DNA of 64,000 bases, taken from sequence record MH460460.1; one strand, written 5' to 3'. A program made the translations under genes and the position numbers. Under the pieces are notes generated by a model. It was not told the origin of the DNA and searched no databases. It saw only the letters and a list, made by a program, of their open reading frames with translations. Numbering within the stretch: position 1 is the stretch's first letter; each line of letters opens with the position of its first letter. Shown one piece after another: positions 7,387 to 37,385 of this stretch.

Positions 7387-7694
7387 TGAAATTTAATTTC
7401 AATGTTCCGTGCTCAGGTACGGAACGTCGCATATGCTATCAACATCCAGTGTTTCCAAACTACGGTTTGGCTTTATCTGTAAACGAAGACCGTACAGCAT
7501 TAACTTGCTGTATTGTTTTCGGCGACATTAGTGATTACCGGGATTTGGAAATCCTCTCGGATCTCACTGCGCCGATTGATGTTTTCGTTTGGGCTTTTAC
7601 CATAATGCAGAAAATTCAAAATACTGTAAATGGTATGAGTGTAGACGTGGAGAATCTTCTCTCCACAAATAAATACTTCTATCAGGAGAAATAA
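7386..7694 (+). CDS. Hypothetical protein
   Basis: 102-aa ORF translationally coupled to the portal. Confidence 0.6.
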   Translation: MKFNFNVPCSGTERRICYQHPVFPNYGLALSVNEDRTALTCCIVFGDISDYRDLEILSDLTAPIDVFVWAFTIMQKIQNTVNGMSVDVENLLSTNKYFYQEK

Positions 7695-8077: not shown

Positions 8078-8103
8078 CGGGAGGCAGCAATGCCTCCCGT
8101 TTT
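8078..8103 (+). terminator. Intrinsic terminator
   Basis: CGGGAGGCA-GCAA-TGCCTCCCG-TTTT (GNRA loop, U tract). Confidence 0.85.
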
Positions 8104-8117
8104 CTTCGGAGGATTTC

Positions 8118-14594: not shown

Positions 14595-14627
14595 CTGTAA
14601 ATAAGGGGTAAGGAAACTTACCCTTTT
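14595..14627 (+). promoter_or_regulatory. CTGTAAATA box abutting a GAAA-tetraloop terminator hairpin (site A)
   Basis: CTGTAAAT-AAGGGGTAAG-GAAA-CTTACCCTTT-T, fully intergenic. Confidence 0.6.
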
Positions 14628-14666
14628 CTATTTGTGGTAGCTTTTTAACTTTAATGGGGAAACCAT

Positions 14667-15245
14667 ATGACTTTCGAACCCGAACACTTCCATTTCAGCC
14701 TTGCGCATGAGAAAAACTTTCTCGCATACGCTCGTATGCGTTTGATTGGTGCCTCACTGACGAAAGAAAACTTCTTCGAGAAAGTTTTTCGTCCGGCAGG
14801 TGAAAAGCTGGATAGCGAGATCATGCAGATCTTCACCGATCTTCCCGGCACGCAGGAAATGCACGCTAACATCGGCTTGGATTCCAATCGCGATTACGAA
14901 AAGGTGTTGCACGAAATTCAACTCGGCTATGAGTATCATTACGATCTCTGGCGGCAGAAGCACGAAGCATTAGAAAAAGTTGTTCTGAATGTGCTCTGCG
15001 CAGTGAGTGACAACAACGCTCACATGCGTTCACCTCACTGGAAGATTCCGGATGATGTTGATTCTCGCGTCTGCGTTTACGGCTGCCATTGTGGTTTCCT
15101 TTTACGAATTGCAGACCAATTCTTTGTGCGTCCTCGCCTTCGCAAAGAGTTGCTCTCAAAAGATTATCCTCCAACGATTCGTGTTCAGATTGCTGTAGCT
15201 CCGAATCAGGACTTTACCTTTGCAACTCTACGCCGTGCATTCTAA
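14667..15245 (+). CDS. Hypothetical protein
   Basis: 192 aa; CVYGCHCG motif. Confidence 0.65.
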   Translation: MTFEPEHFHFSLAHEKNFLAYARMRLIGASLTKENFFEKVFRPAGEKLDSEIMQIFTDLPGTQEMHANIGLDSNRDYEKVLHEIQLGYEYHYDLWRQKHEALEKVVLNVLCAVSDNNAHMRSPHWKIPDDVDSRVCVYGCHCGFLLRIADQFFVRPRLRKELLSKDYPPTIRVQIAVAPNQDFTFATLRRAF

Positions 15246-15610
15246 TGAAAGAAATTCTTATCACTCGCGAAAGAAGATCTGAAATGTTCAAACAACTTCT
15301 GGCACTCCAAACGCAATTCTTTCATGCGCGTAAATGGACGTGGCGTGAAGGTTGGTGCGCTGGCGAAGAGTGTGACGAATGGATAGATGAATCCGGTTCT
15401 ATTATGTGGGCGTCTGTTCAGGATTACATTTTCTCGCCAGCAAACATTATGATGTTCATGGAGAGACACGAAATCTCTATCGAGCATAACGGAAAAGAAA
15501 GTTACACGGCAATAACTAATACCGGGATTGTTGGTCATGGTATTTGCCACCGTAGCGCTGTATTGACAGCAATGATTAATCACTACAGGAAAGAAAATGG
15601 AATCAATTAA
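15245..15610 (+). CDS. NinX/DUF2591-like protein
   Basis: Start ATG 15245; MFMERHEISIEH...YTA...GHG...SAVLTAM resembles the NinX C-terminal pattern. Confidence 0.45.
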   Translation: MKEILITRERRSEMFKQLLALQTQFFHARKWTWREGWCAGEECDEWIDESGSIMWASVQDYIFSPANIMMFMERHEISIEHNGKESYTAITNTGIVGHGICHRSAVLTAMINHYRKENGIN

Positions 15611-16091
15611 TCTGCCAATCAAAGATCGCGTACAGCATTACCCATTCCTTGCTGCGGCGTTCAGTCTGGCGAATATTTCTAAGGCGCGGCGTCGTGCGTG
15701 TGGCGCTGTTCTGGTTCGCGAGATTAACGGCATTCCGACTATCGTTGGTAGCGGAGTAAACGGAACGGAACCGAAGGAAGAAAACCTTTGCGAGACTCAC
15801 GATCTCACGCTGTCTTTTCCCGGTACTGTTCACGCAGAGATCAATTGCGTTTCTCCTTTTCGCGAGAGCGCAAAAGACACGGACATTCTTTATATCACCG
15901 ATTCGCCGTGTGAATTCTGTCTGGAGTTTTTGAAAACAACTTCGATTCGCACTGTTGTTTTCGCTCGCTGTTATCGCATCACGGAACATATGGAAAAAGC
16001 AGAAGGCTTCCGCTTTATTCATATTCCGGAACAGGCAGTGATTGACTATATGAACAGTTCAATTTCTCGCATGTCGCAGGTTATTTCGTAA
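15597..16091 (+). CDS. dCMP deaminase
   Basis: RRACGAVLV, GVNG, VHAEINC (HAE), TDSPCEFC (PCxxC Zn ligands). Confidence 0.9.
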   Translation: MESINLPIKDRVQHYPFLAAAFSLANISKARRRACGAVLVREINGIPTIVGSGVNGTEPKEENLCETHDLTLSFPGTVHAEINCVSPFRESAKDTDILYITDSPCEFCLEFLKTTSIRTVVFARCYRITEHMEKAEGFRFIHIPEQAVIDYMNSSISRMSQVIS

Positions 16092-16100
16092 GGCGTCAAA

Positions 16101-16553
16101 ATGGATCAAGTCTATAAATGCCGAAACTGCAAACACATCTATGACGGAATTGTTAGTAGTTGTGATTGCAATAACGAACCGTTCAAATACACAACTTATT
16201 TGGCGATTCCAAAACCAACTCTGCGTAACCCAAAACTGATTGATCAGTCGCTCATTTCTCCGGGCGTATGGGTACGCAAAGGAACCACAATTTTCGCAGT
16301 AACGCCTCAGAAGAAATTTATCGTGGGAACAAGTTCTTCTGAATGTGATGATCCGGCACAAGAAGCAGAAGCTGCTATTGCTAATGCGCGTGTAATGGGC
16401 GCGAGCAAATTGATGCTCGAAACTTTAATGGTTCTCCAATCGCATTTCCGCACACGCATTGCTATTAATCCGACTTCGGATGTGCCGCGCTCAATGCTGG
16501 AGTTAGTCAACAACGCAATTCAGTATGCAACTGTCGATGCAGAACAGGAATAA
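16101..16553 (+). CDS. Hypothetical protein with N-terminal Zn finger
   Basis: YKCRNCKHIY...CDC. Confidence 0.6.
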   Translation: MDQVYKCRNCKHIYDGIVSSCDCNNEPFKYTTYLAIPKPTLRNPKLIDQSLISPGVWVRKGTTIFAVTPQKKFIVGTSSSECDDPAQEAEAAIANARVMGASKLMLETLMVLQSHFRTRIAINPTSDVPRSMLELVNNAIQYATVDAEQE

Positions 16554-16555
16554 AA

Positions 16556-17428
16556 ATGGACTACTACTTTTCTCTTGAAGAACTAAGAGCGTGGGCGCGA
16601 GTTTGTTTAATCGTGATCGTATTTGGTTCTCTCTTTTACTCGATGTACACCAACTATGTGCGCAATAAATATGAAAAGATTGCGCGTCGTATGTACATCA
16701 ATGGCGAGCTTGCTGCGGGTCAAGTGTGGCAGCATTATCGCAATAAGCGTTACTACACGATTCAGGTTGTGTCTAATGCTATCGCGAACGGCAAAGAGTG
16801 GCCTCTCACTGTCGTCTATATGACAGCGAAAGGTTACGCGATTTATAGTCGCTCTGCGTCGGAATTTATTCGCAAGTTTAAAATGGTTGACGATGAATCC
16901 AACGCACGCGAAACACCTACTCAAAATCTTTTGTCACTAATGTCGTATGTGACGGGACGAGTTTCATTACCGGAACAAGGTTCTAAATGGGTGCGTGAGT
17001 ATGGCGTGCCTACTGGAACATTTAACGAACTCGGTCACTGCGAAACGCGATTGGTGAAAGAAAAGATTGTGGTTGATGACGTAACCAATCTCAATCAACC
17101 GTGTCCGTATGTGAACTACACCGATCAAAACGGAACGAAGAAAACAATCACGCTGCATCACTTCCGACAAAATTTTGTGAAAGATGTAGTGATTACGGAT
17201 CGCGTGTCGCACTGCATTCTGAATAACGAGAATGTGGCAGCATTGGACGAAGCGACTCTTCGCGATGGTGATCGCGTAACTGTAAAAGAAGTAGTAGATA
17301 ACGAATTTATCGTTGTCGATTACTGCGGCATTTCTGCGAAACTTGTAATGGCTACAAAAGGTTTTTACGTGGGCGCAGAATACGTTATTAATGATGGCTG
17401 TCTGACGATAGGGAAAGACGATGAGTAA
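16556..17428 (+). CDS. Membrane-anchored multidomain protein with a DUF1653-like domain
   Basis: N-terminal TM (VCLIVIVFGSLFY); GQVWQHYRNKRYYTIQ...VVY...IYSRSASEFIRKF. Confidence 0.6.
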   Translation: MDYYFSLEELRAWARVCLIVIVFGSLFYSMYTNYVRNKYEKIARRMYINGELAAGQVWQHYRNKRYYTIQVVSNAIANGKEWPLTVVYMTAKGYAIYSRSASEFIRKFKMVDDESNARETPTQNLLSLMSYVTGRVSLPEQGSKWVREYGVPTGTFNELGHCETRLVKEKIVVDDVTNLNQPCPYVNYTDQNGTKKTITLHHFRQNFVKDVVITDRVSHCILNNENVAALDEATLRDGDRVTVKEVVDNEFIVVDYCGISAKLVMATKGFYVGAEYVINDGCLTIGKDDE

Positions 17429-18524
17429 TTACCCGCAACTGGATCTCACCAAAGAGCGCGACTTTGAAATGTACGCTTACGACAATTACGATTGTTTGTA
17501 TATGGGGCGCGTCGATGCAATCAGAGCCGAAGGGCGTCCGGTGAGCGATCCGAAACGTACAGAAGATCAGTGGCGCACAATTCCCGGTTGTGTTATCCAA
17601 CTTGCAAATACAGCAATGGCTTTCCCTGCGCCGCTTTCTAAAAAAGCAAATTGGGTTGCGGCTGTTGATGAAAGCTGCTGGTTCATGCGAGGCGAAACAA
17701 ATATCAATTCACTCAATTCTAAAATTTGGGATGAGTGGGCTGATGAATCCGGCGAATGTGGCCCGATCTATGGTGAAATGTGGCGGCGCTGGCCTGACCT
17801 CAAAGCGTTCTATGATTACACGCAACCTTCTGGCGTGTGTCCGGATGCCGATGTGATTCGTGCTCGCAAAGAAATCGAACGTATGCGTGCGGCAGGCTAC
17901 AAAGAAACGATGATGCTGGACGGTCGCATTCTGTTTGAAGGCGAAATTGATCAGTTGCTGGAAGCGTTAATCGCAATCAAAGATCGTTCGCGTTCGCGCC
18001 GCATTCGTGTTCAGGCATTCAATCCTTCTTATCTGCATATGCAGGGATTGCCGCCGTGTCACACTGGTTTCGAATTCAACGTGTTGCCGTCAACGCTTTA
18101 TGAACAAACGATCATGCGTGCTGCACACGGAGAAGCGTTCGAAGAAACTCTGCACATTAGCGTCTTTCTCAGATCAAGTGATACCCTATTGGGTTTGCCC
18201 TTTAATGTGATCGGCTATTGCTCTATCTTCCATCTGTTCGCGAAATATTGCGGTCTGAATATCGGTAGCTTTACGATTGACAGCACCAACACGCACGTTT
18301 ACGAACATCACTGGTCGGCGCTGGATAAACAGCGTGAGCAATTCGAAGAACTGGTTGCGGAAGTTCGCAGCACTGGCAATCCGATGCAGTATCCGATCAT
18401 GCGTATCGATCCGAAAATCTTCTCGCTGGAACCGAAAGAACTTCTGGATTCGATCAGCGTAGAAATGTTTAATCTCGAAGGTTACAATCCGAAAGGTAAG
18501 ATTACCGGGCGCGTGACCAAATAA
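17421..18524 (+). CDS. thyA: Thymidylate synthase
   Basis: ESCWFMRGETN, IWDEWADE.GE.GPIYG..WR, EIDQL, LPPCH (catalytic Cys), RSSDTLLGLPFNV, HVYEHH; about 50-aa insertion. Confidence 0.95.
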   Translation: MSNYPQLDLTKERDFEMYAYDNYDCLYMGRVDAIRAEGRPVSDPKRTEDQWRTIPGCVIQLANTAMAFPAPLSKKANWVAAVDESCWFMRGETNINSLNSKIWDEWADESGECGPIYGEMWRRWPDLKAFYDYTQPSGVCPDADVIRARKEIERMRAAGYKETMMLDGRILFEGEIDQLLEALIAIKDRSRSRRIRVQAFNPSYLHMQGLPPCHTGFEFNVLPSTLYEQTIMRAAHGEAFEETLHISVFLRSSDTLLGLPFNVIGYCSIFHLFAKYCGLNIGSFTIDSTNTHVYEHHWSALDKQREQFEELVAEVRSTGNPMQYPIMRIDPKIFSLEPKELLDSISVEMFNLEGYNPKGKITGRVTK

Positions 18525-18529
18525 ACTAT

Positions 18530-18551
18530 GGCGGCCTTGTGCCGCCTTTTT
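18530..18551 (+). terminator. Intrinsic terminator
   Basis: GGCGGC-CTTGT-GCCGCC-TTTTT. Confidence 0.8.
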
Positions 18552-18565
18552 CATAGGGAATCCGT

Positions 18566-19276
18566 ATGCCTATCATGCGTAATTGGTTTCACTTTGCGGC
18601 AGTACATCGTGACAATATTCGTGATGTGCGTATCCAATTTGAAAGTGAATCTGAAACAGATCACAATGAAATGTATCAACACAAGATCGGTTCTCCGGTT
18701 GTGCTTGGTATAAATCAAGGCGATAAAAATATTTCCCATTTCATTGATGCGACTATTCTTGCCGTGCGTTTCAGTGAAAGAGTCTGCTATGATATCGCGG
18801 TGCCGATTGGCAACTCAGGCGTTATGGCAGTGATGAAAATGATTTCCGGAAGTAACCTGCGTTCACCTGAAACTGCATACGAACCGGAACCAGCGCCCAT
18901 TGAAAATAAAGTAAATCTCTCCATTGTGCCAAAAGAGCTTGTCGAAGTGGAAGATTTAAGTCCGGTTGCGTGTGAACGTTTTCCGGAAACTTATTTCGGC
19001 GAACAGGTTTCCGATATGCCTCCGCGAAAACATTGCGTGAAGGTGAAGAGTTTAAAAATTTCTGGCACGATGCAGTCAGAAGAAAACCATTTTCAAATCG
19101 GAGACGAAGTTATTATTCCTAACTCTCCAAATTCCATGCGTGGATTAATCTACGCTATCAACGTTAGTCAGCATTTCTCGTATGACATTGCAGTGCCTAC
19201 GCGTGACGGCTACTATGCAATCCATCGCGATATTGATGCTGAATATATTGAAGCTAACCCGGCTAAGGAAGAATAA
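18566..19276 (+). CDS. Tandem SH3/KOW-like repeat protein
   Basis: Two repeats: KIGSPV...ILAVRFSERVCYDIAVP and FQIGDEV...IYAINVSQHFSYDIAVP. Confidence 0.6.
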   Translation: MPIMRNWFHFAAVHRDNIRDVRIQFESESETDHNEMYQHKIGSPVVLGINQGDKNISHFIDATILAVRFSERVCYDIAVPIGNSGVMAVMKMISGSNLRSPETAYEPEPAPIENKVNLSIVPKELVEVEDLSPVACERFPETYFGEQVSDMPPRKHCVKVKSLKISGTMQSEENHFQIGDEVIIPNSPNSMRGLIYAINVSQHFSYDIAVPTRDGYYAIHRDIDAEYIEANPAKEE

Positions 19277-19923
19277 TGTTTAAATATCCGTTTAAAATTT
19301 TAGGTGTTGAAGCTATTGGCACTCAAGGACGCGCTGAAATCTACACCGAAAGTTTAGTTCCGGCTATCGGTTCCATTGTTCCACTTGACCTGCATCCTTT
19401 TGCGCAGCACGGCCTTTGGTTCGTTACAGGTTGTGAAAATGGTGCGATTCAAATCGCAACTTATCGTATTCAGATTGACGATCCGTTTGCTCTGGTGAAA
19501 TTTATCAACTCTGGTTTAGTGCAAAACAAAGACGCTGATAATCGCAGAGTAATGATCAGCAAGTTCACACACGAATTCGTAAATGAATTGGCGCGTGCTG
19601 AAAAGAAATTCCCGAATTGGAACAAAGACGCCGTTTATGCAGCAAGCATTATGGGAGAAGAGAGCGGAGAAACTTTGCAGGCTGCGCTGGACTACCAGCA
19701 AGCACCAGCGCATAGCGATGAGCTGAAAGCGAAGATTCTCTTAGAGGCGATTCAAACGGGAGCAATGGCGTTACGCCTTCTGATCAACGGCGATAGTTTT
19801 GAGCATGACAGCAAATCGTTCTCGGTTGCCGAAGTCGATTCAATCCGCAAAATGTTGGAACTGCAACTCGATCCTGCGGAGATTGTTTCGTTCATCAAAG
19901 ATTTGATTCAGGAAAAAGGATGA
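19276..19923 (+). CDS. MazG-like NTP pyrophosphohydrolase domain protein
   Basis: NELARAEKKFP...IMGEESGETLQAAL...LLEAIQTGAMALR (EExxE...E pattern of the all-alpha NTP-PPase fold). Confidence 0.7.
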   Translation: MFKYPFKILGVEAIGTQGRAEIYTESLVPAIGSIVPLDLHPFAQHGLWFVTGCENGAIQIATYRIQIDDPFALVKFINSGLVQNKDADNRRVMISKFTHEFVNELARAEKKFPNWNKDAVYAASIMGEESGETLQAALDYQQAPAHSDELKAKILLEAIQTGAMALRLLINGDSFEHDSKSFSVAEVDSIRKMLELQLDPAEIVSFIKDLIQEKG

Positions 19924-20171
19924 TTCCATATAATGAAACTGCGGCGCAAATTTCTTTTTATGTTATTTTTTATAGCATACTTCTGTCTCTTAGCGCTGCT
20001 TTATCGTGGTGCGTATGTCGAGTATATAAAGTGATGCACGCTCACTTGAAAATATTCGCAGATTGTACAGACAGAGAGGCGCATATCGTTTTGGCAGCAA
20101 CACTGGCAACATCTACGTGGTTGGTCAATCTTCCTATTAAACTTTTGCTTTTTGTACTCACGCTAATTTGA
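19920..20171 (+). CDS. Small membrane protein
   Basis: Two hydrophobic segments. Confidence 0.6.
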   Translation: MIPYNETAAQISFYVIFYSILLSLSAALSWCVCRVYKVMHAHLKIFADCTDREAHIVLAATLATSTWLVNLPIKLLLFVLTLI

Positions 20172-20199
20172 AAGGGAATAATATTAGCGCGAGGTAGAC

Positions 20200-20511
20200 A
20201 TGTTCAAACCATTTAGATTTTTCGGACAGGAGAGAGCGCCGTCTAATGGGTTTTATCACATACGAAATTTCGTGCGAGATATTCCCGTTGACGCTGGACT
20301 CGAAGAGATTGAATTCGATTTCACTCCGGTAGAAATGAAAGCAATGTATCGCCCATCGTTGGCGCTCGAAGTTTATGACGTTGATGATGAGATTGAAATA
20401 ACTTCTATCGGAGTCCTCGGAAGCAAGTTGCTTGTCCGTTTGCAGAGACGCACTGGAAAAATTGCTCACATCAAAGCAGTATGGGAAGAGAGGTATCTTT
20501 ATGACTCTTAA
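20200..20511 (+). CDS. Hypothetical protein
   Basis: 103 aa, GAGG SD. Confidence 0.6.
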   Translation: MFKPFRFFGQERAPSNGFYHIRNFVRDIPVDAGLEEIEFDFTPVEMKAMYRPSLALEVYDVDDEIEITSIGVLGSKLLVRLQRRTGKIAHIKAVWEERYLYDS

Positions 20512-20905
20512 TTCCGGAATGCTGGTTGAGGATTACACTGGAACTTATCTTGTGCTGCGCGGCATTCCTCCGCGTGAAGGTTGTGTTGTAGAAACCGAAG
20601 ACGTGCCTTATATAAAGCTATCGTCTTCTGGTCGTGGTTATATTCTGGAATACATTTATGTTCCGGAAAGAATGAGAGGACATAAACTTTCGTTGTCCTT
20701 GCTGGAAGTTTTGTTTGAATATCAGGAGAAGAATAAAATCGACTTCCTGAAATTCGAATGTATTTGCAAACCCTTCTGGCGAAAAGTTTCGGCGAAGTTT
20801 CCGAAGCGTATTTTCTTCCCTCCAACTGTACTGCAAAAAACTAATGTCGCTGTTGTGCGCCTGCCACACATAAGACCCTCCGCAATCAAGATTGGAAAAC
20901 TGTAA
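20501..20905 (+). CDS. GNAT-family acetyltransferase
   Basis: LEYIYVPERMRGHKLSLSLL (motif A), PFWRK; likely start ATG 20501. Confidence 0.7.
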   Translation: MTLNSGMLVEDYTGTYLVLRGIPPREGCVVETEDVPYIKLSSSGRGYILEYIYVPERMRGHKLSLSLLEVLFEYQEKNKIDFLKFECICKPFWRKVSAKFPKRIFFPPTVLQKTNVAVVRLPHIRPSAIKIGKL

Positions 20906-20931
20906 ATATAAGGGGAAAGGATATCCCCTTA
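20900..20931 (+). promoter_or_regulatory. CTGTAAATA box plus hairpin (site B; CTG TAA is also the end of the upstream gene)
   Basis: CTGTAAATA-TAAGGGGA-AAGGATA-TCCCCTTA. Confidence 0.5.
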
Positions 20932-20950
20932 ACTTACTGAGAGGCCAATC

Positions 20951-21655
20951 ATGAAAACTCTTACTCCCGTCATTTCCTGCCAATGGTTCCATAACGGAGA
21001 TTTCCCCGGCGAAAATCCCGACTTTGAAGGAACGGTTGTGCGCTATTTCCGCCATCCAAATCATCCCGGCGAATCCATCTGTCCACACTGCAATAACAAA
21101 TTTCACGATCATGGTTTTGTAGACCGTTCGGAATCAATGGTTGTTTGTCCGGGCGATGTTCTTTTCAGTTTCTACGCCAACGATGTGATAGAAAATCTCG
21201 GAAAAATCAGCGCTAAGACTTATAAAGAAATCTTCGGCGCAGAAGCATTATTCCGGGCGCAACAACACAATCGCTCGTTTTCTTCCGGCGATACAGCCGA
21301 AGAAATTTTCCGTCGCAAGTTCTCTCTAGAGTACGCGCCGCAAATCCGTTCATACCTGAATGCTAAACTGGCTGAACACTGCAAACAGCATACGCAGTTG
21401 AAACTTGCACCTCCGTATCCTCCACGCAATTTGAATACACTGGAGTGGCACGTTAACCGCCTGAACGAAGCTATCGTGGAATACTGGACGCTGATTGCTT
21501 CTGAGTATCGCACAAACAATTCGCTTTCTTCTCGTGTTATGTGCGTCTGGAATTCTCCACTGATCAGAGAATTGCAGAATGACCTCAAGCCTCTTGATCT
21601 CAAACTTTTCGCAGAGGAAGAATTTAATGAACGATTCCCCAATTGGAAAAATTGA
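20951..21655 (+). CDS. Hypothetical protein with a Cys/His Zn-binding N-terminal domain
   Basis: VVRYFRHPNHPGESICPHCNNKFHDHGFVD...VVCPGD. Confidence 0.65.
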   Translation: MKTLTPVISCQWFHNGDFPGENPDFEGTVVRYFRHPNHPGESICPHCNNKFHDHGFVDRSESMVVCPGDVLFSFYANDVIENLGKISAKTYKEIFGAEALFRAQQHNRSFSSGDTAEEIFRRKFSLEYAPQIRSYLNAKLAEHCKQHTQLKLAPPYPPRNLNTLEWHVNRLNEAIVEYWTLIASEYRTNNSLSSRVMCVWNSPLIRELQNDLKPLDLKLFAEEEFNERFPNWKN

Positions 21656-22097
21656 TTTTGAAGCTAATCCTTCTATCACGCAGGTAGAAGCGTTCTTAGA
21701 ACACTACAACTGGATTAGCTACAACGGTATTATGCGCGTTAAGAACAACGGCAAACTGTTAGTCTGGTCGGTTGATATCCGCAACCTGTACAACATTTTC
21801 CCGCGCTATGTCGAAGCATATAACAGCGAAGGCGAGCGCGTAAAGGCATTGCGCCTTGTTCTGCATTTTGAATACCGCGAAATGCAAACGGCTATCTATC
21901 CTGCTGATGATATTCTTTGGAAGGATATTCTATGCGCATTTATTTTCCTGCGCGATTACTATCAGAAAATCGAAAGCAGTGTTGAATATTCTCCTTCGAT
22001 TTTCTATGTCCAACCGAAAGCAACCTACGACGATAGTGTTTTCAAAAACATCGACGTTAACTCACCGCACAAGTGGAGCGTAATTGAAAATGAGTGA
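21627..22097 (+). CDS. Hypothetical protein
   Basis: Likely start ATG 21627 with GAGG SD. Confidence 0.6.
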   Translation: MNDSPIGKIDFEANPSITQVEAFLEHYNWISYNGIMRVKNNGKLLVWSVDIRNLYNIFPRYVEAYNSEGERVKALRLVLHFEYREMQTAIYPADDILWKDILCAFIFLRDYYQKIESSVEYSPSIFYVQPKATYDDSVFKNIDVNSPHKWSVIENE

Positions 22098-23049
22098 TAA
22101 CTCTCGCGACATGATTGATCTTCCGGAAATCTATTTCTCCCCTGAATGGCGTGAAGCCAATCCGGATACCGATCCTATGCAAGCTATTCCTAAGCAGTAT
22201 CGCGATGTGCTGTTAGAAAAACAGGATCGCCACGTTACGATCATTCGCCCTATCGACGAAGACACCGAAAGCAATAACATGTTTACGTGCGCAATGGATC
22301 TTCCGATCCCGCCTAATGTTTTGCGCAGCGTTATCGAAGGGCATATGTCGCTGGAAGTTTTCTGCACTAAAAAACAACTGGTGTTGGTAGGCAACAAACA
22401 TTTCGACACGGTTGATTTGTTTCGTTTCTACGGCTGGCGCGATAAAGCCAAAGAGATTCTTGCGCCGCTGTATGTCGATCTTTGGCAACAACTCAAAAAG
22501 ATTCCTGACATGGAATTCTACGTCGATCATGCTGAGGGAATTTTGGTTCGCAAAGGCGGCGTTGATCTGAGTGGTTTCTACACTCCGTTTGAATTGGTTT
22601 CTCGCGCTATCGCTGCGCACGCCATTCACGAAAAAGTAGTGATGCAAATTTCCAAAGTGAACAGCGCCGAAGGTGAAACGGAAATTGTTGTTCCGGAAAT
22701 CACCGGGAACGTCACTTACGAAGATATGGCTGCGGAATTCAACAAACGTTTGAAACCGTTGCAGCCTCTCTACGAACAGAACGGAATTTTCACTGCGTTC
22801 TTTGCGCGTAGCAGTACGCACGATGGAATTGACATTGTTTCGGTTCTGCCTAATGGCATGGGCGGTTATGTCAATCTGTCACTTACCCTGAGTCTGTATC
22901 TGTACGGTAACAATCTGATGCAGCCTAAGTTTAAACAAGAAGGCGATATGTTTATGGTTAGCTGCGAAGATACCGACGCTTTCGTTGCTGCCGATGTTGC
23001 CGCGTGGATCAATTTTGAGGAAATGGAAAGTGAATATAATCTCTGCTGA
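22090..23049 (+). CDS. Hypothetical protein
   Basis: 319 aa; C-terminal domain weakly similar to that of the next ORF. Confidence 0.65.
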   Translation: MSDNSRDMIDLPEIYFSPEWREANPDTDPMQAIPKQYRDVLLEKQDRHVTIIRPIDEDTESNNMFTCAMDLPIPPNVLRSVIEGHMSLEVFCTKKQLVLVGNKHFDTVDLFRFYGWRDKAKEILAPLYVDLWQQLKKIPDMEFYVDHAEGILVRKGGVDLSGFYTPFELVSRAIAAHAIHEKVVMQISKVNSAEGETEIVVPEITGNVTYEDMAAEFNKRLKPLQPLYEQNGIFTAFFARSSTHDGIDIVSVLPNGMGGYVNLSLTLSLYLYGNNLMQPKFKQEGDMFMVSCEDTDAFVAADVAAWINFEEMESEYNLC

Positions 23050-23893
23050 TAGCAACGCCAAACTTGGTCTTTGGATCGTTGTTGAGCCGGAAGAAAACGA
23101 AGTGATTGAGGAAGGAACTTTCGAATATACCTATGTCGGAAAAATTCTTCTGGAAAATACAACGGCGAAAAAAGTCGGCGAGCAATATCATATCACGTAT
23201 GAAGACGCCAGCCTGCCGGGTAGTCCGGAAGTGTACGATCATTTGGCGATGTTCCATGCGCACGCGCTTACGCCTTACTTCGAAAACATCAACGCAATTG
23301 AACATGGTTGCCTGCCGTCTGAATTCCCTGCGCCTATGATCAAGAAGATGCAAGAAGCGATCAAAGATAAAGGACAGACGCTGACTGCTAACGAACTGTT
23401 CGGAAAACTTACGATCAACATTTTCGAAAAAGAAGATCTGATTGCTACGTTTGAAGCGTCAACGGCTGAGGCGTATCTGGATTATCTCGTTAGCGGATTG
23501 CCTCGCGCAAAGAATTTCTACGATCACCGTGCGAAAACGTTCGGGCATTACGGCAACGATAAAACAGAGGCGTATGTAGAACAGCTTAACGATAAACTGA
23601 GCGCTGCGGCAAATGCTGTCGGTGTTCCGGTTTCGTATGCGTTCTTTGATGCCAACGCATTGCATTTCGTTGTCGGTTTCCGTAACGGACGCTCTACGGT
23701 ACAAAGCTATCCGGGCTGCATTCTGAACTTTCTCGAAGAGAATCAGATTGAAGTTCCTTTCGAAGTGACTACCGAAGAAAATTCATTTGCATTTGGTAGC
23801 GGCATTGAAAAAGTTCTTCCGGCGCATATTCTGCATACCATGCGCAATCTGAACAAATGGCCTATTTTGCAATTGATCGGTAAAGTGCGGTAA
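23030..23893 (+). CDS. Hypothetical protein
   Basis: Likely GTG start at 23030. Confidence 0.65.
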   Translation: MNIISADSNAKLGLWIVVEPEENEVIEEGTFEYTYVGKILLENTTAKKVGEQYHITYEDASLPGSPEVYDHLAMFHAHALTPYFENINAIEHGCLPSEFPAPMIKKMQEAIKDKGQTLTANELFGKLTINIFEKEDLIATFEASTAEAYLDYLVSGLPRAKNFYDHRAKTFGHYGNDKTEAYVEQLNDKLSAAANAVGVPVSYAFFDANALHFVVGFRNGRSTVQSYPGCILNFLEENQIEVPFEVTTEENSFAFGSGIEKVLPAHILHTMRNLNKWPILQLIGKVR

Positions 23894-23894
23894 T

Positions 23895-23932
23895 CTGTAA
23901 ATAAGGGATGTGAAGTGCATCCCTTTTGTTTT
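23895..23932 (+). promoter_or_regulatory. CTGTAAATA box plus terminator hairpin (site C)
   Basis: CTGTAAAT-AAGGGATG-TGAAGTG-CATCCCTT-TTGTTTT, intergenic. Confidence 0.6.
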
Positions 23933-23942
23933 GGAGGAAAGA

Positions 23943-24278
23943 ATGTTAGTGATTGATAAGCGCACGCCTGCAAATATCGAATACCGGGAGCTTTCAATAA
24001 GTGGGCTTGTCGGTACGCGGCTTGTTTCTTTGCTTGGGACAAGTATTTTTGCGGAACTGGCGCACGAAAACATTCAAGCAGAACTGGAATTCTATTTGAA
24101 TGCTTGGGACATTCCTAATCAGGCAGAACTGCATCAATTTACTGGCGAAACTTCTGACGCTGCGTTGGAGCTAACGAAGTTCTGCGAAGGTAAAAAGCGT
24201 GTTGCTGTTTGCCGTGATTGGATGAATCTTACTATTCATATGGCGGATATCTCTAATGTTGAACAAACGTCTAACTGA
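23943..24278 (+). CDS. Hypothetical protein
   Basis: ATG 23943 with GGAGGA SD. Confidence 0.6.
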   Translation: MLVIDKRTPANIEYRELSISGLVGTRLVSLLGTSIFAELAHENIQAELEFYLNAWDIPNQAELHQFTGETSDAALELTKFCEGKKRVAVCRDWMNLTIHMADISNVEQTSN

Positions 24279-24543
24279 ATTAGAAGCAATTCTTAAAACT
24301 ATTAAAACAGACGACGCGGCAGTTAATGGCGCATTGGATAAAATCAAACAGATTCGTGAAGAAGAAAATGAAGTGCCAAAAGTATTCACGGTGAAACATT
24401 ACGTGTCTGATGAACATCCATCACTGCGGGGAATAGGAGTAGATATTTTTGTTGCGGAGGATCGCGATGAAGTTGAAGAATTTGCTGCTGACCTTAACCG
24501 CTTACTGGCGAGAATTCCTCCTCACAAAAATTCGCAAGGTTGA
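24256..24543 (+). CDS. Hypothetical protein (N-terminal coiled coil)
   Basis: 95-aa ORF. Confidence 0.55.
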   Translation: MLNKRLTELEAILKTIKTDDAAVNGALDKIKQIREEENEVPKVFTVKHYVSDEHPSLRGIGVDIFVAEDRDEVEEFAADLNRLLARIPPHKNSQG

Positions 24544-24895
24544 GTTTCGCCGTGCGAAGTTTCGCGAAGTCGCTGACGCCTTCCTGCTGTATGAGTCGTT
24601 AAGAAATTTCGATGATCTGTATAGCGTGTGGGATTACGGCACGGTGTATGCTGCATTCCACAAAAATATTCTGATTGGCTATATGTCCATTTCTGACGAT
24701 GAGCTGATCAGTTTTTATGTTTGCCCTGAGTGGCGAAATAAAGGCTTGGGAAATGCCTTGCTGGAGAGATACTCTCCGCTTGTATCACATGTTATGGTGT
24801 GGCGTGATAATAAAAAAGCATTCCACCTATACAATAAATATGGTTTTCGAAAAGAAATCTACTCCACTGAAACAGTTGTTGTGCTAGGAAAATAA
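24467..24895 (+). CDS. GNAT-family acetyltransferase
   Basis: LISFYVCPEWRNKGLGNALL, NKKAFHLYNKYGF; GGAGGA SD before ATG 24467. Confidence 0.8.
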   Translation: MKLKNLLLTLTAYWREFLLTKIRKVEFRRAKFREVADAFLLYESLRNFDDLYSVWDYGTVYAAFHKNILIGYMSISDDELISFYVCPEWRNKGLGNALLERYSPLVSHVMVWRDNKKAFHLYNKYGFRKEIYSTETVVVLGK

Positions 24896-24897
24896 TA

Positions 24898-25053
24898 ATG
24901 GATATGTTAACCGCGTTCGTTTTCTTTATCATGATTATCCTTATGCTGATAGTCGGCGCAGTTACAGTGTTGTTGTTCACAATCAAAAATTTCCCAATTA
25001 TTTCGGCTATCGTTGTTGCAGCGGTAGTCGTCTATTTCATCAAACGCAAATGA
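24898..25053 (+). CDS. Small two-TM membrane protein (not in ORF track)
   Basis: 51 aa, MDMLTAFVFFIMIILMLIVGAVTVLLF...IISAIVVAAVVVYFIKRK. Confidence 0.65.
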   Translation: MDMLTAFVFFIMIILMLIVGAVTVLLFTIKNFPIISAIVVAAVVVYFIKRK

Positions 25054-25060
25054 GGAAAGA

Positions 25061-25474
25061 ATGACTACAATTTATTACGGCGAACGAATTCAGCAAGCGG
25101 TAGATGGCAATAAAACGGATGTGCCGTTTGTTACTGTCTCTCTTGATACTGAAACTCCTAATCCGGAAGAAGTTGCGATCACTCATCGCCTTCTTATTCT
25201 CGGTGCCATTGGCGCAATTCTCGTTACGGAAACTTTGGAAGAACTTTATATTCCCATCCAACTGGACGAGATCAATAACGTGTTTCTGGAAGAACAGTGG
25301 CATTCTCTGCGCAGAAGTCATCCGGTTAAAACGGTTAAGTTCCGCGATGAGAACGACAACACGGGCTACGGCAAGCTGGCGCAGGAACTTCAAAAATATC
25401 GCCGCGCTGGTTTGATGATCATGAAAACCGATGTAGGCGCGACTGCTGAAATTGTGGAGATTGAATTATTATGA
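25061..25474 (+). CDS. Hypothetical protein
   Basis: 137 aa, GAGG SD. Confidence 0.6.
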   Translation: MTTIYYGERIQQAVDGNKTDVPFVTVSLDTETPNPEEVAITHRLLILGAIGAILVTETLEELYIPIQLDEINNVFLEEQWHSLRRSHPVKTVKFRDENDNTGYGKLAQELQKYRRAGLMIMKTDVGATAEIVEIELL

Positions 25475-26190
25475 CAAGTGAGCAAATCAATGCGGCTGTT
25501 GCTAAAACATTGGATATGTTTCGCAGCCTAAGCGAACATGCTAAAGAACAAAATCTGTTTCTCGATTTTGAACAAAGCGGCGCAATTGTGCATTACCCAA
25601 AACGGATCATCAATTCTCGCCAGACGTATTCTTTGTACGATCTGGTAAGCATGGCGATGATCGCTGTCGTCGCTGATAAAAAGTTTTCAGTGTGCATTAA
25701 CGCAACGGCTGGTGAAAATTTTCTACAGCCTTTCGTAGAATTCGAAGGCACTGAGCCGAAGCTGGATGATGTTTTTGTGGCATTGAATGACTCGCTGGAT
25801 AAATTCATCGCTGACAATCCTATCGATGGGCTGAAATGCGGCTGGCGCTATGCACCTGAGCCGGGCATTAACGATGATCGTTCCAGTGCGCCGTTCGCGC
25901 TTCTTAGCAATATTTATGCTAATGGTGCGTTTACGGATATCCGATTCACTCGCGATTTTCTTTTCTTCTTTGTTCTGTCGGATGCTATTCGCTATTCCGA
26001 AAAACATCGTGTGCGCGAAGGCAGTACCGAAAGCTATTCGTACATCGGATTGCCTGATGAATTACATTCCGGATATCACGAAGCAATGAAAGAGATTCTT
26101 GAGAAAGTGCAGAAAGCTATTCTCGAAGATGCTTTCAAAAAACAGTATTCGGTTCAGCCTAAAACAGAGGTGCGCTCCGATGTTCAGTGA
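25471..26190 (+). CDS. Hypothetical protein
   Basis: 239 aa. Confidence 0.65.
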   Translation: MTSEQINAAVAKTLDMFRSLSEHAKEQNLFLDFEQSGAIVHYPKRIINSRQTYSLYDLVSMAMIAVVADKKFSVCINATAGENFLQPFVEFEGTEPKLDDVFVALNDSLDKFIADNPIDGLKCGWRYAPEPGINDDRSSAPFALLSNIYANGAFTDIRFTRDFLFFFVLSDAIRYSEKHRVREGSTESYSYIGLPDELHSGYHEAMKEILEKVQKAILEDAFKKQYSVQPKTEVRSDVQ

Positions 26191-26491
26191 AAATAAAGAA
26201 CTCGAAAGAATCATGGTTCGCATGGCTGAACGTTTTGATTCTTTTTATCACCGCCTGTACTGTCTGAAACTCGAAAAAGGAATGGAAGCAGAATTGCGTG
26301 GGCCAACTGCCTGCTGTCCAAAATCCGGATCGGATGCGGATATGCTGGAAGAGATTCTGCGTTTTCAAAATAAAATCATCACGACGATTGCGGAAATTCG
26401 CGCACTGCAATCTAATGACTCTGCAAAGAGTTACAGCCTTACCGCCAGTGATATTTATTTGGCGGTTCCACAACTGGAATGGATTGAATGA
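26180..26491 (+). CDS. Hypothetical protein
   Basis: Likely start ATG 26180 (GAGG SD). Confidence 0.55.
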   Translation: MFSENKELERIMVRMAERFDSFYHRLYCLKLEKGMEAELRGPTACCPKSGSDADMLEEILRFQNKIITTIAEIRALQSNDSAKSYSLTASDIYLAVPQLEWIE

Positions 26492-26844
26492 AATCTTTAA
26501 AACTACTCTGCCTTTTGTTTGTTTCCTGTTTCAGCTTCGGAAGCACTATCGTAACTTCTGTTGGAAACAGTACATTTGTTTCGGATAGTAACGGAACAAC
26601 GGTATACAACAAGGTGGGAAATCAGATTTACGGAAGCGATGGAACATCTGTAAATAGGTATGGTAACACCACTATTCTGAATGACGGGCAAGGCAATTCC
26701 ACCATCTATAATAAAGTTGGTAGCAGCACGTTAGGCAGCGACGGCACGCTGATTCAGAATGTAGGCGGCAGCACTTTTATTACTGACGGCAACGGTAAAA
26801 CAACTGTTTGCTCTCATGTAGGAAACTCAACCTTCTGCAATTAG
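26488..26844 (+). CDS. Secreted beta-hairpin repeat protein
   Basis: Signal peptide MKSLKLLCLLFVSCFSFG; repeats of xVGNxT/SDG; C-terminal CSHVGNSTFC Cys pair. Confidence 0.75.
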   Translation: MKSLKLLCLLFVSCFSFGSTIVTSVGNSTFVSDSNGTTVYNKVGNQIYGSDGTSVNRYGNTTILNDGQGNSTIYNKVGSSTLGSDGTLIQNVGGSTFITDGNGKTTVCSHVGNSTFCN

Positions 26845-26852
26845 GAAAACCT

Positions 26853-27605
26853 ATGCGCCCGTTATTTGAATTGCGTCAAATGGAATCTTTGTTTTGGTAT
26901 GCTGAAAATATTTTGCGAATCGCGCAGAAACTTCCGCTAATTCCTATGCCAAACTATCAGACGGAACAAAATTCTATTCTGAATGAAGAAGAGATTATTT
27001 CTCGAATTGAACAGATTAAAGGTTCGCTGTCGCGTCTTACGAAACATACAGCGTTCTATACTCGGATTCAAAACGAGTGTTCGTTTCTTGAAATCGAACA
27101 GATAGATCTTAACTTCCAAAAAATTGACGCTATCGTTGCTGTGGTAGATCGTGCGATTGCAGAGCGGGGAAGAATCCTATCGATAAGTTCATCCACGTAT
27201 CTTCTCAATCAAGAAGAAGTTATGCCACCACTAACGATAACTGAATTCACAAGCAGTTATTCAATACAGGCGCATCGCAATATTTACCATCACGCGTTGC
27301 AAGCAGAAGCATTCGAGTGGATGTGTTGCTTGGACGCGTGCCTATCGCATGGAAACTTAGGCGAGCTTTTACCAGAACCTCCACAACCTGTCGGAGCGCC
27401 TAGCGGCAATCTCTACGATTACAACGATCAAATTTGTGCTTCAATTTCGCAAAGAACCATGCGTGCATTGCACGAACGAACTACTTACATGGTTTCGACT
27501 TACGGATTAGAAGTCCTCTTCCCTTGCCTTGTTGATAACATTCGGATGCTTGATGAAGACGTTCAAGAGCGAATGGAGGAACGACGCAGAAATAAAGGAG
27601 ACTGA
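26853..27605 (+). CDS. Hypothetical protein
   Basis: Likely start ATG 26853. Confidence 0.6.
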   Translation: MRPLFELRQMESLFWYAENILRIAQKLPLIPMPNYQTEQNSILNEEEIISRIEQIKGSLSRLTKHTAFYTRIQNECSFLEIEQIDLNFQKIDAIVAVVDRAIAERGRILSISSSTYLLNQEEVMPPLTITEFTSSYSIQAHRNIYHHALQAEAFEWMCCLDACLSHGNLGELLPEPPQPVGAPSGNLYDYNDQICASISQRTMRALHERTTYMVSTYGLEVLFPCLVDNIRMLDEDVQERMEERRRNKGD

Positions 27606-27606
27606 A

Positions 27607-27867
27607 ATGTTTTCGGGGAAAACTGTTTTTGAATTGAAGGCCACGCACGGATTACCTCTCGATGTATCGGTTGATCGAATCATTGTTCAAAACAATATGG
27701 CAATCGACTGGCCTGAATTTATTCGCACCGCACGTAAAAATCTTCGTTGGGATTTTCAGACAATTTCAGATATTGAAAATGCTTTGATGGATGCCGACGT
27801 GGATCGTAACGTAGCAGCGGAAATTGTAACGCGCTGCAAACTATGGGTGATGCAAAACCCAATTTAA
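27607..27867 (+). CDS. Stand-alone alanyl-tRNA synthetase-like fragment
   Basis: FSGKTVFELKATHGLPLDVS...MAIDWPEF resembles AlaRS lsG..aFkLyDTyGfPldlt...l.vD..gF; AAGGAG SD. Confidence 0.6.
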   Translation: MFSGKTVFELKATHGLPLDVSVDRIIVQNNMAIDWPEFIRTARKNLRWDFQTISDIENALMDADVDRNVAAEIVTRCKLWVMQNPI

Positions 27868-27929
27868 TAAAGCCAATAGTGCTATAGTTCAAAAGTTCTA
27901 TAGCCTACTTCCTAAAAAGGAACGAAGTC

Positions 27930-28571
27930 ATGAAAAAAGAAACTCTGATCAAAGCAACTAACGCTGTCGCTAATGCAACTCCGGAAGCAATCAAGTCTCT
28001 GGATTTGAAACCGGTGCGTAAATACAAAGAGCATACGAGCTATTCGAGTGCTTTTGCAATCGGCGAACATGCGGAGTTGTGTTTTGATATGTCAGAGCAA
28101 ATTCCTTTCGGTCGTATCGAAGGGATTGAGTTTGGCGTAAACGGAATCAATTACACTGTCGCTATGGCAGTTAATACAGGCACGCAGGAAAAGCCTGATT
28201 ATGAATTCCATAGCGGTCGTCCTATTGTTGGTGTGGATGAGCGCCTGTTGGATTCGTTTGTTTCCACGCTGCCGAATGATATCGCAGGCAAATATCCTAC
28301 GCTGGAAGGTTGTAAATTCCAGATCGGCGATACAGTGCGTTTCAAACTCGAAGATCACGTTGCGAAAGTCGGTGCGGCAATCCCTGTTTTGATTTGGGGC
28401 GTTAGCTACACCAAAGGAAAAGTAATGTATGACGTGAGCATTGACGCAGATGAATATCAAAATACTTCTGCGTACAATGATATCTACGAGCGTTATTTGA
28501 AACACTCAATGGATCGCGTCGATTCTGTTTTCATTCAACCAATCGGCGGGTGGAAACTTGAAACAAATTGA
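27930..28571 (+). CDS. Tandem SH3/KOW-like repeat protein (paralog of 18566-19276)
   Basis: FAIGEHAEL...IEGIEFGVNGINYTVAM and FQIGDTVRF...IWGVSYTKGKVMYDVSI. Confidence 0.6.
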   Translation: MKKETLIKATNAVANATPEAIKSLDLKPVRKYKEHTSYSSAFAIGEHAELCFDMSEQIPFGRIEGIEFGVNGINYTVAMAVNTGTQEKPDYEFHSGRPIVGVDERLLDSFVSTLPNDIAGKYPTLEGCKFQIGDTVRFKLEDHVAKVGAAIPVLIWGVSYTKGKVMYDVSIDADEYQNTSAYNDIYERYLKHSMDRVDSVFIQPIGGWKLETN

Positions 28572-28716
28572 ATTGCTTCCGCATCAAAAAGAAGCTATGA
28601 AACTTATGCGTAGTTCCTCAACGCTGTATATTGAACTGAACAGAGGAACTACATGTACGAGCCTTTCTATTCGTAATAAGGAACAGAAAAATGTCAATGC
28701 GAAAGATCGTAATTGA
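28558..28716 (+). CDS. Small ORF resembling the N-terminus of an SF2 helicase (Q-motif) (not in ORF track)
   Basis: TTG start; KQIELLPHQKEAMKLM; 52 aa. Confidence 0.4.
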   Translation: MKQIELLPHQKEAMKLMRSSSTLYIELNRGTTCTSLSIRNKEQKNVNAKDRN

Positions 28717-29056
28717 AAGCGGCCTCGATTTTGGGGATGCGTGGTCGAAGTTGCTGACTAACATTCACAACGATTCGAAAACCTTACTGGTTATTGATCG
28801 TGAAGGCTGGAACGGTGCTGATCAGTACGTGCGTATTATTTCTCCGCAGGCACCACATCCGGACGATTCGCCCGACGCGTTCCCGCAGAATCCGTATTTC
28901 ACTATGCGCGATAACAACGCTAAGGCTGACGGAACTTTTTCGCCGTTCGCTGTACTGAAAACCACGCAGAACAAAGTTTTTCCGTGGACTCCTTCGCAGG
29001 GCGATCTGTTCGGCAAAGACTGGCGCATTTCTTCGGTGAAAGTAGATGCAGAATAA
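28691..29056 (+). CDS. DUF2829 / Tad2-like (Thoeris anti-defence 2) signal-sponge homolog
   Basis: LDFGDAWSKL...DREGWNGADQYV...FPWTPSQGDLFGKDWRI matches the DUF2829 FgeA...R.gWng...pW.pSq.D.la.DW pattern. Confidence 0.8.
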   Translation: MSMRKIVIESGLDFGDAWSKLLTNIHNDSKTLLVIDREGWNGADQYVRIISPQAPHPDDSPDAFPQNPYFTMRDNNAKADGTFSPFAVLKTTQNKVFPWTPSQGDLFGKDWRISSVKVDAE

Positions 29057-29405
29057 AAATCCTGTAATGCTCGCCGTTAAGATGCAGTTTATTGAGCAAC
29101 TCGCTAACGGCTTCGAAAACACTGCAATCTTTCGTCTCGCCTGCACAATCAATCAGGATAAGAAATTCAATCCGGATGAGGTGTTTGAGAAGGCGAAGAA
29201 TCGCATGTTCCCGGAAGGCATAGAAAAAGCGATTGTATCTGGCTACGATTATATGGTGCTGAAAGCGTATGTGGACGGCAACGAAATTCTGATCAAGCCG
29301 GGTACGATTATTTTTGTTCGTGAGGATTCGCATGTTGGCGTAATCACTACGAGCGACGGCGTTCCGGATGTTTCGATCCGCGATGGAGAATTGATTGTCA
29401 ACTAA
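29046..29405 (+). CDS. Hypothetical protein
   Basis: 119 aa. Confidence 0.6.
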   Translation: MQNKNPVMLAVKMQFIEQLANGFENTAIFRLACTINQDKKFNPDEVFEKAKNRMFPEGIEKAIVSGYDYMVLKAYVDGNEILIKPGTIIFVREDSHVGVITTSDGVPDVSIRDGELIVN

Positions 29406-29883
29406 GGGGAAGTTCGTGACAGCGATACGTGGGTTCGTAACGCGACTTCTCTGCACGCACGATTGGAAACGTTTTCGAACTATTCACGGAGACGAAGCTA
29501 ATTATGCGCGTAGCGAATGGCGTTGCACGAAATGTAACAAACATCGCTACAGTATTTTCATCAACGAAATGGAACAAGATGTTCCCAAAGAGCCGTTGCT
29601 AAAACGCATTGCGCATTCGATCCGCTACACCATCGGAAGCATTGCGTTTCATTGCCTCAACAAAGAAGACCGTGATGCAATTTATCGCGATTATCGAATG
29701 GGGCATGAGTTGCGCACGGTTGAAACGTGGATGTGCGAATTTCCGCAGGCGGTAGAAACAGCACGTTATCTACGTGTCCATAGTTACGGATACAAAGATG
29801 ATTTGCCTTTCGACCATCCGGATCGCCATGCTGCGCGGGATATCTCCTGTTGGCGAGAAGACTTTAGGCGTCGATTTAAATAA
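29395..29883 (+). CDS. Hypothetical protein with an N-terminal C-x-H...CxxC (DUF1660-like) module
   Basis: LLCTHDWK...WRCTKCNK. Confidence 0.55.
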   Translation: MSTKGKFVTAIRGFVTRLLCTHDWKRFRTIHGDEANYARSEWRCTKCNKHRYSIFINEMEQDVPKEPLLKRIAHSIRYTIGSIAFHCLNKEDRDAIYRDYRMGHELRTVETWMCEFPQAVETARYLRVHSYGYKDDLPFDHPDRHAARDISCWREDFRRRFK

Positions 29884-29884
29884 A

Positions 29885-29925
29885 CTGTAAATAAAGGCTA
29901 TCAGCATATTGTTGGTAGCCTTTTT
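29885..29925 (+). promoter_or_regulatory. CTGTAAATA box plus terminator hairpin (site D)
   Basis: CTGTAAAT-AAAGGCTATCAGCA-TAT-TGTTGGTAGCCTTT-TT, intergenic. Confidence 0.6.
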
Positions 29926-29943
29926 CATTTTCTGGAGCGTAAC

Positions 29944-36779: not shown

Positions 36780-36782
36780 CGT

Positions 36783-37377: not shown

Positions 37378-37385
37378 GGTTTATC

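Follow-up and report, generated by a model that had tools for sequence, protein, structure and literature searches.

A putative phage-specific promoter box abutting terminator hairpins in Dickeya phage vB_DsoM_JA13

Boxes and hairpins at gene junctions

The DNA considered here, referred to as the window, comprises bases 1-64000 of Dickeya phage vB_DsoM_JA13 (JA13; MH460460.1, 254,061 bp, genus Salmondvirus). Our subject is a nine-base element, CTGTAAATA (henceforth "the box"), and the hairpins that adjoin it. The whole annotated JA13 genome was analysed by scripts and individual sites were judged by the GenBank annotation. Plus-strand genes begin at 175.3 kb and continue past the record start up to 41.3 kb, and those on the minus strand extend from 175.1 kb down to 41.3 kb, the primase gene JA13_208 being the one exception. 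In the window the box is found five times, always on the plus strand, against 0.45 matches expected (0 of 100 shuffles reached 5). Four copies occupy gene junctions, at 14595, 20900, 23895 and 29885; the fifth, at 26648, falls inside JA13_042 and was missing from the earlier list.

Each of the four junction copies abuts a hairpin, as an earlier examination of the letters alone (the sequence-only reading) had reported: the 5′ base of the hairpin lies -1 to 0 nt from the end of the box in 4/4 cases. Folding energies are -13.1, -10.4, -11.8 and -17.8 kcal/mol, in the order of the sites. The same reading was right in assigning U tracts to three of the four hairpins, in placing three copies entirely between genes, and in describing the terminators at 8078 and 18530 as devoid of the box. 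On the first two counts the odd site is 20900, where the hairpin has no U tract and JA13_030 uses the TAA of the box (20903-20905) as its stop codon. The form typical of an intrinsic terminator (a G+C-rich stem-loop followed by a U tract) is found at 14603, 23903 and 29893 but not at 20909, where lack of the U tract makes the hairpin a doubtful terminator. Contact between the two elements can amount to sharing of a base, the first base of hairpin 1 being the last A of box 1; the next gene, JA13_021, starts at 14667. Two minus-strand variants that had been listed both exist. One, CTGTAATTC (58268-58260), is accompanied by a hairpin; the other, CTGTAAGTA, is at 50994-50986, about 6 nt from where it had been placed.

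Sequence comparison with two relatives, JA29 (11.7% diverged over the compared region) and a soil-metagenome contig (7.5%), showed that changes at the four window sites affect 0/72 box positions and 0/164 stem positions, as opposed to 4/38 loop positions. Hairpin 1 (14603..14636) is identical in both relatives, and the differences in hairpin 3 are confined to loop bases. Invariance of boxes and stems next to changing loops indicates that both elements are under purifying selection. No compensatory pairs were seen in the stems of JA29 and the soil relative, the stems being invariant and the relatives too similar. A search of IMG/VR for wider relatives of the junctions returned JA29 alone. The genes at the junctions where a hairpin is fused to the box (-10 kcal/mol or better, 5′ base within 2 nt of the box end) have no homologs in four phages used for motif comparison, namely Erwinia phage Y3, Dickeya phage AD1, Yersinia phage fHe-Yen9-02 (Yen9-02) and Pseudomonas phage Lu11.

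A wastewater contig matches only positions 23895-23932, a stretch of 38 bases that holds the box and hairpin 3; to either side its sequence is unrelated. This match hints that the junction moves between contexts.

A lone -10-type element shared by a phage clade

Genome-wide, the box turned out to be the core of a longer motif, aAAW-CTGTAAA-ta, conserved more widely to the left and more loosely to the right. Exact copies of CTGTAAATA number 17 in JA13 and are all co-oriented with genes. The same is true for 42/42 sites scoring at least 12 bits against a position weight matrix, none of which is antisense; CTGTAAA alone occurs 67 times co-oriented and 10 times antisense. From the end of the box to the annotated start codon there are 27-38 nt at hairpin-free sites and 27-63 nt overall. 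No -35-like partner or other conserved block was found between -45 and +30 around the box in five genomes, which also led us to reject an architecture of the T4-middle (MotA-box) type. Strand specificity, the 27-38 nt distance and the missing -35 partner support the suggestion of the sequence-only reading that the box is a lone -10-type element. Overall, the view that the box is a promoter element of this type, for which a -35 element would not be needed, is well supported by these sequence patterns.

Three independent lines place the likely transcription start about 7 nt after the box. First, across the five phages a purine takes up the 7th position after the box in 84-96% of the sites and the 6th position is T-rich; a pyrimidine/purine succession at these positions makes the usual -1/+1 pair. 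Second, only 18 nt separate the end of the box from the annotated start of gp029 in Y3, and 14 nt from that of gp018, which rules out a -35-like role and confines the transcription start to within a few bases of the box. Third, several hairpins without U tracts in Y3, AD1 and Yen9-02 begin exactly at +7 or +8 from the box, as would be expected of 5′-terminal stem-loops. With such a start, the box would occupy positions -15 to -7 and would present a T at -12 and an A at -11, as in sigma70-type -10 elements. The promoter would thus consist of a single block, aAAW-CTGTAAA-ta, spanning about -18 to -7, with initiation at the purine some 7 nt past the box.

The motif is not peculiar to JA13. Copies of AWCTGTAAA outnumber those of a reversed-pattern control by 45 to 5 in JA13, 31 to 4 in Y3, 33 to 1 in AD1, 27 to 2 in fHe-Yen9-02 and 32 to 2 in Lu11; in Pseudomonas phage PaBG, which was counted too, the figures are 10 and 2. 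Ahead of the sigma and single-stranded DNA-binding protein (SSB) genes the box has stayed in orthologous positions, with diverged bases on its flanks. In addition, the GenBank record of Lu11 (JQ768459.1) annotates 16-mers that start with CTGTAAAT and end with GTA as "putative middle/late promoter". The boxes of the window match these 16-mers in the common CTGTAAAT(A/G), in the AAAA/AAAT prefix and in the purine at +7. Because of this annotation the promoter itself is not new; judged from sequence, the JA13 box is a new instance of the existing Lu11 prediction. The two resemble each other in core, length, AAAA prefix and placement before genes, and the phages share a gene neighbourhood (sigma, SSB, RecA). 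They differ in that no fusion to U-tract terminators is present at the Lu11 sites shown; the promoter label in the Lu11 record is a prediction as well. A full-text literature search for the 9-mer gave nothing relevant, the paper on the JA phages makes no mention of promoters, and no experimental transcription study of the Lu11/PaBG/Y3/JA clade of jumbo phages was found in the literature consulted. That CTGTAAATA forms the core of a phage-specific promoter of this clade is supported by the comparison of the genomes.

Genes preceded by the box include those for DNA polymerase, ligase, two SSB proteins, primase, a Pol III subunit, and exo- and endonucleases, a dCMP deaminase/thymidylate synthase block, many hypothetical genes and the sigma gene. 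No box precedes the capsid, sheath and portal genes of JA13. The box would thus drive replication, recombination and nucleotide metabolism along with many accessory genes. The likeness to T4-type late promoters that the sequence-only reading drew did not hold in this respect, the targets not being late structural genes, and the "T4 late" label does not suit the class of genes served.

The T4-type late promoter is TATAAATA, read by gp55 together with gp33 and the gp45 clamp. Like it, the JA13 box consists of one -10-type block and lacks a -35 element, and TGTAAATA matches the T4 consensus at 7/8 positions; for the box, too, a phage-encoded specificity factor is likely. The box departs from the consensus in having G for A at position 2 in 42/42 sites and in the additional invariant CT and AAW. 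Moreover, T4 late promoters serve structural genes and the JA13 box replication and accessory genes.

A strand-specific and mostly intergenic element might also be expected if the box acted in RNA, for instance as an endoribonuclease cleavage site 5′ of stem-loops, rather than as a promoter. We regard this as highly improbable. In the 65-nt gap upstream of the minus-strand primase gene JA13_208 there is a box (181143, minus strand), and no co-directional gene lies further upstream; a box in a place that no co-directional transcription reaches favours a promoter over a processing site. Such a signal would also sit poorly with the fixed spacing to the purine at +7, the relatives' hairpins that begin at +7 or +8, the match to the T4 late consensus, and the fact that most copies of the box have no stem-loop.

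Several further box sites were noted. The copy at 26648 is probably an internal promoter, some 200 nt ahead of JA13_043. Tandem arrays of four boxes (genome 243837-243970) and three boxes (249792-249868) are found on the plus strand before JA13_314 and JA13_319, beside topoisomerase genes. The spacing of the first three boxes is exactly 27 nt, and similar pairs are present in Y3 and AD1. Four minus-strand boxes (genome 76692, 77589, 77795 and 77900) are in or around a gene-poor gap. Finally, a minus-strand box at genome 173046 is followed 34 nt later by a 545-codon open frame (171366-173003) that ends with JA13_200. The annotated JA13_200 (284 residues) may lack part of its 5′ end, and the gap 172221-173463 may be coding.

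Candidate factors for recognition of the box

Most likely, the box would be read by the host RNA polymerase with a phage-encoded specificity factor, for which the best candidate is the product of JA13_221 (186322-187359). This protein matches phrog_17569, "RNA polymerase sigma factor", with E = 6e-139. A profile built from 38 homologs matches region 2 of primary sigma factors (SigA); the Pfam Sigma70_r2 model gives 17.8 bits, below the cut-off. In an AlphaFold model (pLDDT, the predicted local distance difference test, 81.6) residues 4-234 align to residues 111-446 of E. coli sigma70 with Z scores of 12-16. Sigma70_r4 gives no match; C-terminal helices (288-341) are modelled, and few rows aligned them. 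Together, profile and model suggest that JA13_221 possesses region 2, the domain that recognises and melts the -10 element. RefSeq likewise labels the protein a sigma factor, the family being present in 81 phage records, and the PaBG paper gives the same name to a member of the family (PMC7412058).

JA13_221 does not resemble T4 gp55: it is a 345-residue protein with a sigma70-like domain running from region 1.2 to region 2, not a mini-sigma. It is the only sigma-like gene found, of another type than gp55, and no search was aimed at gp55 or gp33. JA13_322, a homolog of PaBG gene 112 (28% identity), was considered as a second sigma and rejected, showing no sigma family signal in Pfam and being of unknown function in PHROGs. 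PaBG gene 112 has been tentatively called a second sigma factor (PMC7412058).

The box is enriched in phages whose sigma homolog is 33-100% identical and not in those where identity is 22-25%. This distribution is consistent with the sigma reading the box, and shared ancestry explains it equally well. One complication comes from the location of the sigma gene, itself behind a box that in JA13 lies 32 nt upstream; Y3, AD1 and Yen9-02 have a box in the corresponding position. A second complication is the presence of another motif, CTAATTT(T/A), co-oriented with genes in 17/20 cases and situated 25-36 nt upstream of some ten genes, most of them structural, usually downstream of a terminator (Table 1). 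This sequence is a candidate late promoter. In T4, gene 55 is a pre-late gene, and JA13_221, as a middle gene, could possibly read CTAATTTW instead. A host sigma70 holoenzyme modified by some other early protein of the phage would then read the box, in which TAAATA (T at -12, A at -11) partly reproduces the sigma70 -10 hexamer. On balance we consider this rather unlikely: neither a -35 nor an activator box lies beside the motif in the five genomes, and the bases at -15 to -13 (C, T and G) do not vary, in contrast to host promoters. The parallel with sigma identity also goes against it, with the reservation about ancestry made above. Because the sigma gene carries the box and CTAATTTW is found before structural genes, JA13_221 is no more than a candidate for the factor that reads the box. 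The sequence-only reading had each cassette gated by a phage sigma-like factor; a sigma70-family gene does exist in JA13 and its relatives, and the box before that gene and the second motif complicate the picture.

Table 1. Positions of boxes, hairpins and related features (genome numbering, which coincides with window numbering up to 64000)
Feature	Position	Strand	Remarks
Box variant AATA-CTGTAAATG	7620..7632	+	20.2 bits; in 3′ end of JA13_006, 63 nt before JA13_007
Plain intrinsic terminator, no box	8078..8108	+	ribosome-binding site and start of JA13_008 directly after
Putative promoter box 1, AAAA-CTGTAAATA	14595..14603	+	21.9 bits; 8 nt past JA13_020 stop; predicted start 14610
Terminator hairpin 1 and T-rich tract	14603..14636	+	stem-loop 14603-14626, 10 bp, GAAA loop
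Plain intrinsic terminator, no box	18530..18553	+	before JA13_027
Putative promoter box 2	20900..20908	+	24.3 bits; predicted start 20915
Hairpin 2	20909..20931	+	8 bp, -10.4 kcal/mol, no U tract; JA13_031 start at 20951
Putative promoter box 3	23895..23903	+	19.3 bits; 1 nt past JA13_034 stop; predicted start 23910
Terminator hairpin 3 and U tract	23903..23933	+	stem-loop 23903-23925; then ribosome-binding site GGAGG; JA13_035 start 23943
Fifth exact box	26648..26656	+	19.6 bits; inside JA13_042, no hairpin
Putative promoter box 4	29885..29893	+	17.1 bits; 1 nt past JA13_048 stop; predicted start 29900
Terminator hairpin 4 and U tract	29893..29934	+	stem-loop 29893-29923, 14 bp, -17.8 kcal/mol; JA13_049 start 29944
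Three more high-scoring boxes (36038, 38818, 39420)	36034..39428	+	within coding sequence, no terminators
Box variant AAAT-CTGTAAACA	38000..38012	+	intergenic, 31 nt before JA13_064, no hairpin
One-mismatch box TAAT-CTGTAAGTA	50986..50998	-	before JA13_082, no hairpin; CTAATTTG 11 nt further on
One-mismatch box CTGTAATTC (58268-58260) and fused hairpin (58259-58237) with U tract	58237..58268	-	before JA13_092
CTAATTT(T/A), candidate late promoter	42675, 50975, 58163 (window); 68318, 76200, 82187, 95262, 111914, 146130, 159252, 165173	-	
GGGTGGC/GCTGCCC terminators	76200-76240, 124990-125013, 151840-151861, 159270-159291, 163150-163167, 165190-165211	-	
JA13_322	252546-253679	+	homolog of PaBG gene 112

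Fusion of the box to terminators

At 6 of 42-45 boxes, the four junctions of the window plus 194804 and 242412, a strong hairpin begins at an offset of -1 to +2 nt relative to the end of the box. The six stems have different sequences and the same offset. Adjacency in 6/42 sites compares with 4.3% of random intergenic positions (P = 0.009) and 0.9% of random genomic positions (P = 3e-6), so that chance is exceeded only moderately. The hairpin adjacency seen by the sequence-only reading is in excess of background; it is not a property of the box as such, holding for 6/42 copies and being absent from other genera.

With the start predicted above, transcription at the fused sites would begin inside the 5′ arm of the hairpin. 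RNA folded from +5, +7 or +9 lacks any stem next to the U tract; the full hairpin does form in read-through RNA. These folds suggest the following mechanism. The intrinsic terminator of the upstream unit would start at the last base of the box, at the four window junctions and at six in the genome. RNA arriving from upstream would fold the complete hairpin and stop, while RNA initiated at the junction would begin within the 5′ arm, be unable to form the base of the stem by the U tract, and read into the next gene. Each accessory cassette would in this way be insulated from its neighbour and depend on its own promoter. The efficiency of termination is, like the start position and the identity of the factor, an expectation from these data. 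Escape from the terminator by RNAs that start just after the box, as the sequence-only reading had envisaged, is thus reproduced in silico, where all fused hairpins lose their 5′ arm; it does not extend to every box, some of which precede complete terminators. We view this promoter-inside-terminator switch as a plausible consequence of the anatomy of the six sites.

The same anatomy could result from compaction with no switch involved. The box would be a promoter and the hairpin the terminator of the upstream unit, the two abutting merely through the box touching a stop codon; some attenuation may then affect box-initiated RNA as well, or the main role of the hairpin may be to stabilise 3′ ends. 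At 20900, 186281, 190605, 194804 and 249792 the TAA of the box is indeed a stop codon, and where a box overlaps or touches a stop codon a terminator has nowhere else to go. Many terminators stand directly before the next ribosome-binding site with no promoter, which suggests that leaky termination is normal in JA13. In addition, the fusion is not kept outside the JA phages and the enrichment over intergenic background is of the size given above. Against this explanation, any -10-like geometry puts the start 3-9 nt into the 5′ arm, so that the functional outcome follows from anatomy, and six independent hairpin sequences share one range of offsets, -1 to +2. Compaction alone strikes us as a rather doubtful account.

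A number of observations weigh against the switch. The fused sites are a small minority of the boxes, their excess over intergenic background is modest, and the hairpin next to the 20900 box has no U tract. No fused form occurs in Y3, AD1 and Yen9-02, and the Lu11 sites shown are not fused either; given the absence from the first three, the fusion may be simple compaction. Complete terminators occur downstream of the box at +6 (222421), +11 (77900) and about +50 (190605), so box-initiated RNA is not always spared. The position of the sigma gene behind a box, and the possibility that its product reads CTAATTTW, bear on the part assigned to the factor. The public runs matched on 18101-24100 are metagenome contigs, probably DNA. 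With all this considered, we lean slightly towards the complete explanation, that is a clade promoter, a phage factor and insulation by a promoter inside a terminator. More tentatively, and with somewhat less than even confidence, we propose that the fused junctions are one-way insulators, in which about 40 nt would stop upstream polymerase and, when the factor is present, launch terminator-immune transcripts into the next cassette; every accessory block of the JA phages would then be gated independently and could be exchanged between genomes along with its junction.

Start-site-dependent control by hairpins has precedents. Late promoters of T4 genes e, soc and 49 initiate within hairpins that block translation of early transcripts. 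There, as proposed for JA13, two RNAs from two starts differ in hairpin formation and the start decides the fate of the RNA. The JA13 case differs in that the hairpin precedes the ribosome-binding site and is an intrinsic terminator, so that the choice would be between termination and read-through rather than one affecting translation. A phage moron is a gene equipped with a promoter and a terminator of its own. At the fused junctions, too, accessory genes are bracketed in this way; unlike in morons, the terminator of one cassette shares bases with the next promoter, and this promoter is phage-specific, not host-type. In phage phiKZ, promoter-proximal terminators have been identified by ONT-cappable-seq, and a whole hairpin in the 5′ untranslated region aborts >90% of the transcripts into a short RNA (PMC10914365). 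This layout resembles the JA13 sites where a terminator stands shortly downstream of the box (190605, 77900 and 222421), as opposed to the fused sites, where the start is predicted to lie inside the stem.

Other arrangements of boxes and terminators were noted. A terminator precedes the box at genome positions 136007, 151786, 163132 and 166479, and the 77900 box is followed 11 nt on by a terminator-like hairpin. At genome 190605-190690 (plus strand) the box overlaps the JA13_224 stop codon and a strong terminator with a T run lies about 50 nt on; this layout could attenuate JA13_225 or give rise to a small RNA about 75 nt long. An identical terminator hairpin is present at genome 194815-194840 and 204617-204644 (plus strand), once after an intact box and once after a decayed look-alike, CTAAAATAA, which suggests that box and hairpin can be copied together. 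At genome 228848-228876 (plus strand) a box variant, CTGTAAACT, sits in the loop of a terminator-like hairpin before JA13_296. Separately, many JA13 junctions, and also Y3 and AD1, carry a repeated terminator family of almost uniform sequence, made of GGGTGGC, a 4-7 nt loop, GCTGCCC and a T run.

Seen in this context, the fusion of box and terminator appears to be a variant of known start-site-dependent hairpin control, a minority feature seen only in JA-type phages. For the clade at large, the analysis provides a promoter model (box at -15 to -7, start at +7 from the box), a proposed regulon that possibly includes non-coding RNA genes, and a candidate sigma factor. If the proposed mechanism is correct, the fused junction would be a very compact natural insulator (about 40 nt), useful for the design of synthetic operons, and would help explain the transcriptional independence of the accessory cassettes.

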